Source: Zygnema circumcarinatum SAG 698-1b (lineage: Eukaryota; Plantae; Zygnematophyceae). From it: 64,000 nucleotides of DNA. The position numbers and the translations under genes were made by a program. The notes below the pieces were generated by a model. The model did not search any database. It saw only the letters and a list, made by a program, of their open reading frames with translations, and was not told the DNA's origin. Where the stretch lies: the NCBI GenBank assembly GCA_037447605.1, contig CM074812.1:1674001-1738000 (forward strand). Direction: 5' to 3'. Positions 16,254-36,265 of the stretch are shown piece after piece; the first letter of the stretch is position 1, and every line of letters starts with the position of its first letter.

Positions 16254-24083
<7,830 letters not shown>

Positions 24084-31800: not shown

Positions 31801-32669
31801 CCAGAAAAGCTTCGAAAAAAATACACAAACATGTTCTCTAACAACTAAAAATGAATTTTATCTCATTCAAATCGTCGAAAACTCCTGAAAAGGTCTCCCC
31901 TTTCTATGAAGGGCAACGCATGTCTCTCTCTGTCTCTCTCTCCCTCTCTCTCTCTCTCGCTCTCTCTCTCGCTCTCTCTCTCCCTCTCTCACAGGGAGTG
32001 TGCGGGTGAGGGAGGGGTGTGAGAGCAGGCTTCCAATGCAGACCTATCCCGCAAGCTCGCCATGCAGACGCAGAGGTTGGAGCTTGCTGTGGCTCAGAAT
32101 ATGAGAGCTGCCTCCCTCTCTCTCTCCCTCAATGAGAGCAGCACTCTGGGAAGTGCCCGGTTCGGGCAGGAATACATAGACGAGAGTGATGAGGTGAGTA
32201 GTAGTCCCTACGCTGTTTTAAGGTTTGTAAGGATATGCTTTAGTTCTTTTTGAGGGGGTAAGAGATTCCATATGTTGAACTGCAGCTCCTATGTTTTCGG
32301 CTCCGTGGTTTCAACAGAGTAATGACTGTGGGCTCTCGCTCTCTCTCGTCTCTCCCTTCTTCTATCTCTCCCTCTCACACACACAAACATTCGCACACTC
32401 TCTCCCCACACTCTCTTCTCTCTTTCCTCACTCTCTCTTCTGAGATCTCCTACCCTCAACTTAAAGCATATGAGTTGGAACGCCATTCTCCTTTCAAAGC
32501 AGAAACATAAATCGAATCAGTGATTTTATCAGTCTATTTAAGTACTCCGTTTTTCTTAGTTCAACTTCATCTGTTGGCATCTTTTCCTTTTTGTATGCAG
32601 GTGGCTGAACGTGTGCTGACGTGGATATTGCGGTTATTCCCAGGAGGGAGGAGTAACTCAAAGCAATGA
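25867..32669 (+). CDS. BLI: BLISTER-like coiled-coil protein (PRC2/IRE1-associated in Arabidopsis), about 1117 aa, 12 exons
   Basis: join 25867-26001, 26483-28381, 28625-28744, 28902-28967, 29175-29285, 29477-29553, 29664-29731, 29968-30096, 30613-31058, 31615-31683, 32029-32193, 32601-32669 = 3354 nt. Motifs AGRKKLDEFRRKKA, DFAALEQHIEDLTKEKFTL, SQALASEVIGLEEK, QAIDDLLDE, LSRKLAMQTQRLEL and DEVAERVLTWILRLFPGG match BLISTER. Confidence 0.9.
26008..26090 (-). repeat. Degenerate (CCCTAA)n telomere-like array at the start of BLI intron 1
   Basis: + strand aatcctaatctcaaccgtaatcttaaccctaatcctaacc...cctaaccctaact, immediately after the donor at 26002. Confidence 0.7.
27150..28130 (+). repeat. Coding tandem repeat in BLI exon 2: five copies of an RLVEKP-core module, 234-nt (78-aa) period
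   Basis: E/D-K-P anchor codons at 27152, 27299, 27533, 27767, 28001 (spacings 147, 234, 234, 234). Confidence 0.9.
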
Positions 32670-33894
32670 GGACTCCACCTCCATTTTTAGGGTTCAGGAG
32701 ATTTTAGGGTTTGGCAACGCGCCTGCAAACTCTAATCAACTGAAGGCCAAATCAAGCCAGCCATGTGTGCGCTCTATGTAGAAAATCAATTCTTCAGTTT
32801 GCACTTTATTGGATTTATAAGCTTTTCCTGCCCCCTTCTGTTTGTGCTTTGCTGGTCTCCTCGTGGCCGCTGATTGGTCGTTCAGTTAGGGCTACGTCCT
32901 GCAGCTGACGTGGAAGGCGCAAGGACGGTCATATGACGTCAGTGGGCGCCGCCCGACAAAGTCGCCTTCGAATCATACTTTCCTTTTTTAGAACTAGTAC
33001 ATTTCAGCGGACGTATCAGTCGATCTTTAATATACTCGTTTTGATTTGTAGCTGAGGAACGCTTTTTTTTGGAACAAAAACGGAAACTGGACTTTTTCGT
33101 TCAAAATTGACGAGATGACAAATTACGACAGCTGTTTAGCGGGAAATGTCGATGGCGTGGCAGCTTATAAATGGGCCAACGAAATCAACAACGACAAAAC
33201 AATCTGCGGCCTGGATTATACGGACCGTACGCACGTTTGGACGTTTCCGCCGACACACTCCCAGGAATTGGTCCATTCAAACAGTGCCGCGTGGCATTTA
33301 ATAGTCAACTCTTCCGGATGGATTGAGGGAGTCCAAAAGATTCAAAAGGTCGCGAATTTTTCTAATAATAACATTTCCTGCCCATAAAGGAAGACAATTG
33401 CAACAAATTTAAATACGTTGGTCCAATCCGACTCCACCACGTCACGAACAAAATATATTTCAACTAATTAAAAGTTTTCAGAGTACAAATTGAACTTTTT
33501 GCAGCTTTCAACTGAAAACTTTATCAAGGACTGTCCGCGACTAAGAAAAACGTTTTGCTGCCCCCGTTCGTCCGCCCCCGCCGTACGCCCTTCCCCTCCT
33601 TCACTGCCGCCCTCCCCCACACCCCCTTCCCTCCCCCGTACCTTCCTCTCCCTCCCTCCCTACATTCTCTACGTTTTCCCTTCTCAAATTATCTCTTTTC
33701 TCTCTCTCCCTTTCCCCCTCCCTCCCCCCCTCCCTCCCTCCCCCATCCCACCTCCCTCCCTCCCTCCCCTCCCTCCCTCCCCCCTCCCACCTCCCTCGCT
33801 CCCTCCCTCCCCNNNNNNNNNNCCTCCCTCCCTCTCTCCCTCCCTCCCCCCCATCCCCCCTCCCTCTCTCCCCTCTTCCCCCCTCCCTCCCTCC

Positions 33895-34445
33895 ATGGCT
33901 ACCCTCCGTGAGTCCACGAGCCTCCTCATGGCGGCGGAGTACGGGCAGGGCCTCTCCCACTCGTGGGCCCACGTCCCCCTCCCTTCCTCCTCCGACGACC
34001 GCCCGACCCCTCTCGTCCTCGCCCGCCCCGCCACGCTCGCCTCCTCCTCCCGCTCCTTCCAGGCCAAGGTCCTCGCCCTCTCCTCCCTCCTCCTCCTCTG
34101 CCTCATCGCCATCACCCTCCTCGCCCTCCAGCCCGCCCCCAAGCTCCGTACATCTCGTAAGGCCCGTACGGTCCATGATGCAGGAGTGCCGCTACAGCAG
34201 TCGCTGCAGCAACATCACATTGGTGATGTTGAAGGAGGCAGGGAGGGGCGGAAAGAGGAGGGAAGGGAGGGGGCCATGGCCATGGCGGCGGTCGAGCTGC
34301 GAGTTGCGTATGGAGGGAGAGAGGTGTCCGGAAGTGCAGCGGTAGAGAGCGGAGTGATGAAGGAGCAGCCGGACGTGAGAGTGGGAGGGACGCCGGGGAA
34401 ATTCTACGCTCTTGTGAGGACTCTCTTTCTCTCTCTCTCTCTTTT

Positions 34446-34495
<50 letters not shown>

Positions 34496-35352
34496 CCTCT
34501 CTCTCCATTCTCTATTCTTTCTATTCTGTAGTCAGTAACTGACTGACTAGCACTGTGGTTAGATGAGAGGCTGAGTCATACCGTCTCACCTGGGGAATTT
34601 GAACTTATCTGACAAACGAATTTTCTCAAGAAAAAAATTATCTGTCTGATCGAGGTCCTGTGCCCATTTTTCTGCTCAATTTTTATCAAGACCCAATACT
34701 TCTTGAAAGAATATCATATGAAACTAGAACTTAAAGGAAGAGGGGACTAAAATGTCGCGGTACACGCTCGAGGATTCGCAGGTTTTGCACTCCTCCCGCG
34801 GCAGTGGTGATGCTGAACCCAAAAATGCACAGGCTCTACACTGGTGAGTGCCACCCCCTCCCTCCTCCCCTTCTCTCCCACTCCCACTCCCACTCCCACT
34901 CCCACTCCCACTCCCACTCCCACTCCCACTCCCACTCCCACTCCCACTCCCACTCCCACTCCCACTCCCACTCCCACTCCCACTCCCACTCCCACTCCCA
35001 CTCCCACTCCCACTCCCACTCCCACTCCCACTCCCACTCCCACTCCCACTCCCCCTCCCACTTCCTCTCCCTTCCCCTTCCCCTATCTCCTTATCCTTCC
35101 CCAACCCCCCCCTCTTTCATCGCCCTTGTGTCCCCTCGCCTCTTCTCTCTCCTTTCCCTTCAGATTAAGTGCGCAGGAATTTTTTCCTAGTCAATTTCTA
35201 TTCGTTGAAGGTCCTGCTTTCTTGCTCTGCTAAAAATAAAAAATAAAAATGAAAAAAAAGGTTCACCTTTTGCATTCCTCGTGGTTTCAGGATCGTGCTC
35301 AACATCCCGAGCGGTAGCTCTGCCGATAAAGGTACAAATTTTAATATAAATT

Positions 35353-35389
<37 letters not shown>

Positions 35390-35813
35390 TCCTCATTTCT
35401 CCACACTCTGTTCATCTTTAAAACGCTGCTAGTTAGAGAAACTTTATGCCAAAGATAAAATATAAAAAAAATAATTTGAATGCTCGGTATTTTCTGACTA
35501 TTTTTTGTCGGGTATATGCACCCCAATTAAATAATTAAATAATTAATTGATTAATTAATTATTTAATTATTTGCTGCCCCTCTTTGCAGGAATCACAATT
35601 CTTGAATACCTTCAACCTCTATCTTTATCAGAGGCCAATTTTTACACCTTCACACTATACGAGCAAACCCATCTCTTGCTTTCTGAAGGCGCCTTCAACA
35701 ACAACAACATGGGTGACCTTCACTACTTCTTGGAGACTCGTGGGCTCAGCGTCCCTGTGGGGGCATTGCACCTTCTTGTTAATGGCGGCTCGGAAATTAA
35801 GCTCTCTAGATGA
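33895..35813 (+). CDS. Divergent FT/TFL1/MFT-family PEBP protein with N-terminal transmembrane anchor, 281 aa, 4 exons
   Basis: join 33895-34413, 34782-34843 (62 nt), 35291-35331 (41 nt), 35590-35813 (224 nt) = 846 nt. Exon 2-4 sizes and junctions equal those of FT. Aligns to FT: [27 protein letters not shown]|V..LHW|IVLNIP..G|..[21 protein letters not shown]. Hydrophobic segment aa 59-78. Confidence 0.85.
34876..35052. repeat. (CCCACT)n hexamer, about 29 copies, in PEBP intron 2
   Basis: Directly visible. Confidence 0.95.
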
Positions 35814-36232
35814 TGTTAGGCCATGCCCTAGTTGTTGTTGTTGTTGATGTTGGCACTTCATGCACAATGTCTAAAGGTTCTAGGGCTATTAGAGTATGTA
35901 GAGTGTACAGGGTTTTTGTAAAGTAATGGTATGTTTGGTGGAGTCCTCCTATAGCATGATGAAGATGGCATGAAATTGTTGGGAACACTAGAAAGGTTAG
36001 TTCGGTGTATATTGACCTTAAACGTTATATGCGGCTCAAAGGTTGGTCGTTTGTATAGTTCGATCGAGAGGAGTAGAAAGGACTGTTGTTAAACACAGAG
36101 TTGAGAGCAACTTGCTAGAACATGGGACTTCATGAACCATGTGTGCGCATAGGTCGAGCTTCCCTTCCTTTCACCGAAATGGTCACTTCGATGTACATTT
36201 TGTATTGTATAAAAACAAATCAGTTGTGTGTC

Positions 36233-36265
<33 letters not shown>

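Follow-up and report, generated by a model that had tools for sequence, protein, structure and literature searches.

A 64,000-nucleotide stretch of the Zygnema circumcarinatum SAG 698-1b genome (assembly GCA_037447605.1, contig CM074812.1, positions 1,674,001–1,738,000; hereafter the window) contains an expressed five-exon gene that consists of one 5′ non-coding exon and four coding exons, all on the + strand. Sequence comparison indicates that the gene is a true, extremely diverged member by descent of the EuPEBP family (FT/TFL1/MFT), and that its product is not a canonical functional PEBP. The first coding exon is greatly enlarged and encodes a hydrophobic segment ahead of the PEBP-like domain. 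On balance we think it probable that this is an EuPEBP-derived gene with an added N-terminal anchor, whose product is most likely a membrane-tethered pseudo-PEBP without a ligand pocket.

The coding exons, at 33895–34413, 34782–34843, 35291–35331 and 35590–35813, are all bounded by GT-AG introns and give a stop-free translation of 281 aa, with junction residues FYAL/V, LH(W)/I and (G)/I. A first-pass annotation, made from the DNA letters alone, had described a four-exon gene here. The GT-AG borders of its coding exons are present, and the transcript has five exons, as an RNA contig that joins 33582 to 33913 reveals.

Plant PEBPs such as FT, TFL1 and MFT are soluble, some of them are mobile, and they require a conserved pocket and surface to be active. 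For comparison with these proteins, a degenerate DNA pattern for the family exon 2 was used and yielded 120 metagenome loci, one of which (L051) is Arabidopsis FT. Forty-six proteins were rebuilt from the loci with this pattern, and four contiguous ones were confirmed as PF01161 by Pfam. A profile was constructed from 20 non-redundant plant EuPEBPs (FT/TFL1/MFT) rebuilt from the metagenome loci. The spliced Zygnema protein scores 57–59 bits against the profile (E = 1e-19, one target) over positions 22–160 of 172, and the alignment is unbroken over all three coding splice junctions; the best of 2000 shuffled controls reaches 3.3 bits. Alignment with Arabidopsis FT gives 26% identity (36 of 138 columns) and is gapless from FT residue 64 to about 133, in agreement with the ungapped alignment to FT 68–127 claimed earlier. 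The top pairwise score, 48 bits, is to MFT-like proteins.

The exon sizes of 62, 41 and 224 nt, the phases 0, 2 and 1, and the junction residues are those of the FT/TFL1/MFT family, and together with the profile score they uphold the assignment to this family proposed in the first-pass annotation. Exon 2 (34782–34843) retains the L-H-W residues, and both of its junctions are present in RNA contigs. The 41-nt exon 3 (35291–35331) codes for IV.NIP, as placed by the profile alignment, and the coding part of exon 4 (35590–35813) comprises 224 nt including the stop codon. In exon 1 the PEBP-like domain occupies 34282–34413 and ends with FYAL at the family exon 1 boundary. Among 44 canonical genomic loci, rebuilt with the 62- and 41-nt exons fixed, exon 1 measures 195–207 nt and the commonest exon 4 is 218–230 nt; the first coding exon here is 486 or 519 nt. 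The reported enlargement of exon 1 is therefore real, and the figure of 519 nt applies only when the 5′ intron is retained, the coding length being otherwise 486 nt.

The single exons hardly betray this ancestry. Pfam finds no PEBP (PF01161) match in any exon taken alone. In a phmmer search of the PDB, the tail of exon 1 aligns in correct register with Hd3a (residues 27–67, E = 0.28) and with FT (E = 1.7), matches that are too weak by themselves, and exon 4 gives no match. With either the whole of exon 1 or just its PEBP part as the query, a word search of 5.8 billion clustered proteins returned no relative; for exon 4 there was none in an exhaustive HMMER search of 1.84 billion representatives or in a tblastn-confirmed scan of metagenome contigs. 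Exact look-up of the unspliced open reading frame (ORF) product from either ATG found no record. Language-model look-alikes are uninformative for exon 4, and for exon 1 they are LEA_2/NHL clusters at a score of 0.72, which is below the meaningful level. Within the window, tblastn with the model detects no paralogue, and Pfam shows nothing useful in the neighbouring ORFs. In a maximum-likelihood phylogeny with MFT, FT and TFL1, an analysis that the first-pass annotation had put forward, the gene lies on a branch of 9.7 changes per column versus a median of 0.12, about 80 times as long, and this length precludes its placement in the MFT, FT or TFL1 clades.

Sixty-six columns show a conservation of at least 90% among the canonical proteins, and 22 of them are retained here: V30, V37, P52, V54, G58, L67, P80, H87, W88, V90, I93, P94, G102, Y108, P111, L124, Q127, F147, L153, P156, V157 and A159. 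Almost all of these belong to the beta-core. The DPDxP motif in exon 2 has become SSRGS (D71, P72, D73 and P75 are S, S, R and S), and in exon 4 GIHR (G116-I117-H118-R119) is replaced by EANF, so that only H87 and W88 remain of the pocket signature DPDxP ... H ... GxHR. Columns P8–F22 and F162–R173 have no counterpart, and the N-terminal DPLxVGxVIGDV of the family is reduced to a possible IGDV vestige. With these substitutions the anion/ligand pocket is lost.

Evidence for expression and splicing comes from RNA contigs of three public runs (X1, X2 and X3), which were placed on 32600–34870; a 179-nt (CTCCCA)n array in intron 2 prevents read mapping across the whole gene. Junction 34413/34782 is found in contigs of X1, X2 and X3. 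Loose contig ends at 34844 in the same three runs carry the first letters of exon 3 and confirm junction 34843/35291, so both of these predicted junctions are borne out by RNA. The presence of spliced contigs in each run means that all three hold RNA from this organism. In two runs the contigs are about as deep as those of the neighbouring gene.

An X3 contig of 1646 nt (depth 53) covers 33185–33582, jumps 330 nt with GT..AG borders, and continues at 33913–34413 and then into exon 2 and onward; the shorter side of the joint 33582/33913 has 255 letters. Since this contig skips 33583–33912, there is a further 5′ exon and a 5′ intron. The non-coding exon starts at 33185 or further upstream, ends at 33582 and includes a two-codon upstream ORF at 33318. 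The intron (33583–33912) is built of (CCCT)n repeats as detected by Tandem Repeats Finder (TRF). It has 330 nt as assembled, but its real length is uncertain given the N gap at 33813–33822. In X2, contigs continue past the donor as far as 33656 and cross the acceptor starting at 33871, with a depth equal to that of the exons, and thus the 5′ intron is retained in X2 and removed in X3. As assembled it preserves the frame and has no in-frame stop, so its retention moves the start from 33928 to 33895 and adds 11 residues.

Junction 35331/35590 appears to be used, as suggested indirectly by the continuous profile alignment and by the positions of two contig ends. If intron 3 is spliced out, the ends of contigs X3-9 and X2-7 would fall at positions 36233 and 36254, within the (CCATGC)n array at 36232–36265, and assemblies typically break in repeat arrays of this kind; retention of intron 3 would instead put these ends in unremarkable sequence. 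From the lengths of the same contigs, the 3′ untranslated region (UTR; 35814–36254) would reach at least to 36254. At the other end of the gene, transcripts of the upstream gene stop at about 33052–33070, some 115–130 nt before the first base seen of the 5′ exon. One X2 contig of 4731 nt spans the upstream gene through to 33656, which could represent read-through or overlapping transcripts. As this contig connects the upstream gene with the 5′ exon, the transcription start site is uncertain.

In the spliced leader, the sole AUG before 33928 is that of the two-codon ORF at 33318. According to the scanning model of initiation the first usable AUG is favoured, and with this order of AUGs 33928 is the likely start of the spliced mRNA. 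The spliced mRNA is most likely translated from the ATG at 33928–33930, the first substantial AUG, which opens a 270-codon ORF in the same frame as the PEBP part and gives a protein of 270 aa that does not include the ESTSLL sequence. Intron-retaining transcripts would start at the alternative ATG (33895–33897) and yield the 281-aa form with ESTSLL. The proposal that 33895 is the general start codon does not hold, as this ATG lies inside the 5′ intron together with the first 11 codons and half of ESTSLL.

From 33928 the extension begins with a tail of 47 aa rich in S, P, A and L (33928–34068). This is followed by a proline-free hydrophobic helix of 20 residues (34069–34128), a candidate signal-anchor or transmembrane segment that begins at residue 48 (59 in the long form) and has a Kyte-Doolittle mean of 2.79, and by a basic juxtamembrane stretch (34129–34173) with a net charge of +5 over 15 residues. 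Next come the tetrapeptide IGDV (34219–34230) and a low-complexity linker insert of 13 aa rich in G, E and R (34234–34272), which was recognized by alignment to FT and by an insert-deletion test. The hydrophobic segment is present in the mature mRNA, in frame and downstream of the first usable AUG. Assembled transcripts contain 34069–34128, and the transmembrane segment of the first-pass annotation therefore withstands the objection that transcription might start below it. The helix and basic stem that had been described are indeed in frame in the mature mRNA; their translation is only probable.

Several properties of the DNA suggest that the extension, including the hydrophobic segment, is translated, and we consider this likely. 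The GC content at the third codon position (GC3) is 0.96 over 33928–34068 and 1.0 over the hydrophobic segment, compared with 0.62–0.66 and 0.35–0.70 at positions 1 and 2, whereas the adjoining CT-rich intron is aperiodic, with a GC of 0.63–0.74 in every phase. Only 1.4% of pyrimidine- or purine-rich control windows match this GC3 contrast, microsatellites being the strongest among them. The 64-kb window has only six equally periodic regions, among which 33889–34166 is the least repetitive and starts where the ORF starts. In addition, only the ORF frame yields a proline-free hydrophobic peptide, the other two frames being S/P-rich.

The IGDV sequence offers a further argument. In-silico deletion of the 13-residue insert lifts the profile score from 59.1 to 65.4 bits. 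Controls in which the upstream residues are shuffled score 61.8 bits at the 95th percentile and at most 65.6 bits among 500, which places the gain at about the top 1%. By this gain in score, IGDV is a probable vestige of the N-terminal (V/I)GDV of the family. There is no in-frame AUG between the transmembrane segment and IGDV, and therefore if IGDV is part of the protein, so is the hydrophobic segment.

With respect to topology, the 15 residues before the hydrophobic segment carry a charge of +3 and the 15 residues after it +5. The more basic flank tends to lie on the cytosolic side (the positive-inside rule), and by this rule the protein leans weakly to an N-out/C-in orientation with a cytosolic domain. 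The PEBP-like domain has no N-x-S/T sequon and no cysteine. These properties weakly favour a domain that faces the cytosol rather than the lumen, and to the same modest extent they go against the type II, lumenal or vacuolar orientation put forward in the first-pass annotation.

The acidic dileucine motif ESTSLL was correctly located at 33910–33927. It straddles the acceptor 33912/33913 and consequently is translated only from intron-retaining transcripts. The [DE]xxxL[LI] pattern arises in 6% of shuffled tails and in 48% of shuffled whole proteins, and it recurs at aa 232 inside the PEBP domain. As a sorting signal the motif was rejected, being near chance level and absent from the product of the spliced mRNA.

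Taken together, this plant EuPEBP gene has diverged to an extreme degree but has retained the exon sizes, intron phases and beta-core residues of the family. It has lost the anion/ligand pocket and the conserved segment at the C-terminus, and of the one at the N-terminus most is gone. Its first coding exon has about 120 additional in-frame codons that specify the S/P/A-rich tail of 47 residues, a leucine-rich helix of 20 residues, the basic cluster and the G/E/R-rich linker. The product is most likely a single-pass, membrane-tethered pseudo-PEBP, and its PEBP-like domain more likely faces the cytosol, as the positive-inside rule would predict. It would then serve as a membrane-bound scaffold or decoy, not as a ligand-binding mobile signal.

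Several observations weigh against the tethered pseudo-PEBP. The branch of 9.7 changes per column shows that constraint is altered or very relaxed. Homology to canonical PEBPs becomes detectable just past M128/M130, and the AUG of M128 at 34276 has the best Kozak context, with G at −3 and G at +4. The extension is of low complexity, has no relatives in the searches and adjoins non-coding CT-rich repeats; its three-base periodicity could be partly due to trinucleotide-like repeats, and an additional internal transcription start, compatible with the contigs, may exist. TRF also detects a weak 24-nt (8-codon) period of 2.5 copies and 71% match at 34070–34128, the DNA of the helix, and the helix may have grown through in-frame tandem duplication. 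Since stop codons cannot occur in CT-rich DNA, and 33908–34345 is open in a second frame as well, an open frame alone means little, and it was dropped as proof of coding in the CT-rich part. Such points raise the question of whether the gene instead encodes a soluble, truncated PEBP-like protein that starts at M128, perhaps from an internal transcription start, with the upstream CT-rich part forming a long 5′ UTR. The start of profile homology at residue 130 and the strong initiation context at 34276 would both be explained in this way, as would an extension that has no stops, is open in another frame and is without relatives. However, the transcripts hold the AUG at 33928 upstream, in frame and with no stop between, and ribosomes would have to skip four AUGs, three of which (34175, 34178 and 34226) are out of frame and have ORFs that overlap 34276. 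The high GC3 begins at the ORF start, the IGDV vestige is upstream of M128, and a start at M128 would omit the first ~22 residues of the PEBP domain. We regard a soluble product as unlikely, albeit the most serious competitor of the tethered protein.

An anchored protein of the opposite orientation has also to be considered, i.e. a type II PEBP with a cytosolic tail, a working acidic dileucine and a domain that is lumenal, vacuolar or released by stem cleavage. The order of tail, transmembrane segment and domain resembles that of type II anchored plant proteins, for which the LEA_2/NHL look-alikes are a lead only; ESTSLL is present in the intron-retaining transcripts; and animal PEBP4 sets a precedent for the entry of a PEBP into the secretory pathway (PMC9369291). 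Against it are a dileucine motif that is at chance level and is split by the acceptor, a C-terminal flank more basic than the N-terminal one, a domain without sequon or cysteine, and the absence of an RRxL motif, and we find this orientation rather improbable. A transcribed relic, that is, a decaying and functionless PEBP duplicate whose N-terminus is an accident of neighbouring simple repeats, would fit the loss of the pocket with 22 of the 66 near-invariant residues kept, the very long tree branch and the lack of relatives of exons 1 and 4 in the searched collections. Yet the frame is intact across the coding exons at saturation-level divergence, and by our arithmetic about seven stops would be expected in 154 random codons, the length of the diverged ORF. 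The intact frame together with canonical splice sites that are in use argues against a decayed pseudogene, and the contig depth in two runs and the confinement of the retained residues to the structural core point the same way; a relic seems very improbable. Slightly less remote, and speculative, is the thought that streptophyte algae have a clade of membrane-anchored EuPEBPs, in which regulated retention of the 5′ intron in this pocket-less member switches the tail between forms with and without the acidic dileucine, and with it the sorting of the tethered domain. Were this so, the mobile florigen-type signal would have in this clade an ancestor or counterpart that is membrane-bound.

The tethered pseudo-PEBP can be compared with several known systems. 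According to Bennett and Dixon (2021; PMC8408984), Klebsormidiales, Coleochaetales and Zygnematales have canonical proto-MFT EuPEBPs that are about 50% identical to AtMFT; the word ‘transmembrane’ is absent from that paper. The present gene resembles MFT-like EuPEBPs in its 62- and 41-nt internal exons, its last coding exon of about 224 nt, its junctions, which follow FYxL and interrupt the W of LHW and a G, its beta-core residues, and its best pairwise match. It differs from the proto-MFTs in that the protein is 24–26% identical and is without DPDxP, GxHR and the conserved N- and C-terminal segments. Unlike canonical EuPEBPs, it has a first coding exon of 486 or 519 nt with a hydrophobic helix, and a length of 270 or 281 aa versus about 175.

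Animal PEBP4, which carries a signal peptide, is a secreted protein (PMC9369291). In both PEBP4 and the clusters of conserved secreted PEBPs an N-terminal hydrophobic targeting sequence precedes the PEBP domain, as it probably does in the Zygnema protein. In PEBP4, however, the signal peptide is short, cleavable and at the very N-terminus, and the pocket is kept, whereas the hydrophobic core described here, of 20 residues from residue 48 or 59, lies beyond the first ~30 residues, has a basic cluster and a linker of about 50 residues behind it, and precedes a domain that has lost the pocket. Since the present gene has the plant exon structure, its origin is independent of the PEBP4-type secretory PEBPs. 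The LEA_2 and NDR1/HIN1-like type II proteins resemble the predicted protein in having a short tail, a single transmembrane segment and a beta-rich domain; there is no sequence homology with them, and the look-alike score, as mentioned, is below the meaningful level.

Two other types of extended PEBP were encountered among the metagenome loci. Locus L018 (187–861, + strand) contains an intronless PEBP (PF01161) of 225 aa with a basic-then-hydrophobic, signal-peptide-like N-terminus. Cysteines and several N-x-S/T sequons are also present, and PEBP4 and ‘conserved secreted protein’ clusters of arthropods appear as its look-alikes. The PEBP (PF01161) of loci L003 (4470–5114, − strand) and L081 is likewise intronless; its N-terminus is extended by about 40 residues, and it has the variants RVAY, LHWIV.NIP.G and ..EQ, as in the window protein.

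PEBPs of the secretory pathway are therefore already known, and what we have not found described is the layout of tail, anchor, linker and PEBP domain on the plant exon structure and without the pocket. The searched literature contains no description of a transmembrane FT/TFL1/MFT-type PEBP, which accords with the remark in the first-pass annotation that the architecture was unfamiliar for the family. If the tethered pseudo-PEBP is real, the algal relatives of land plants would also have employed the family as a tethered module that is independent of ligand, and the gene would provide a natural test case for telling the PEBP functions that require the pocket from those that require solubility. 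The gene is a warning for annotation, too: single-exon searches miss it, and the position of its start codon is determined by the 5′ intron.

The window as a whole is about 49% GC and has a eukaryotic look, with many simple repeats and 10-N assembly gaps, such as the one at 33813–33822. The introns and 3′ UTR of the gene are themselves full of microsatellites, including (CT)42 at 34421–34505, (CTCCCA)33 at 34875–35071, (AT)16 at 35355–35386 and (CCATGC)6 at 36232–36265. Elsewhere in the window, a CAG-rich region at 18361–18626 shows strong three-base periodicity, with a GC of at least 0.92 at one phase, and may belong to another gene and encode poly-Q.

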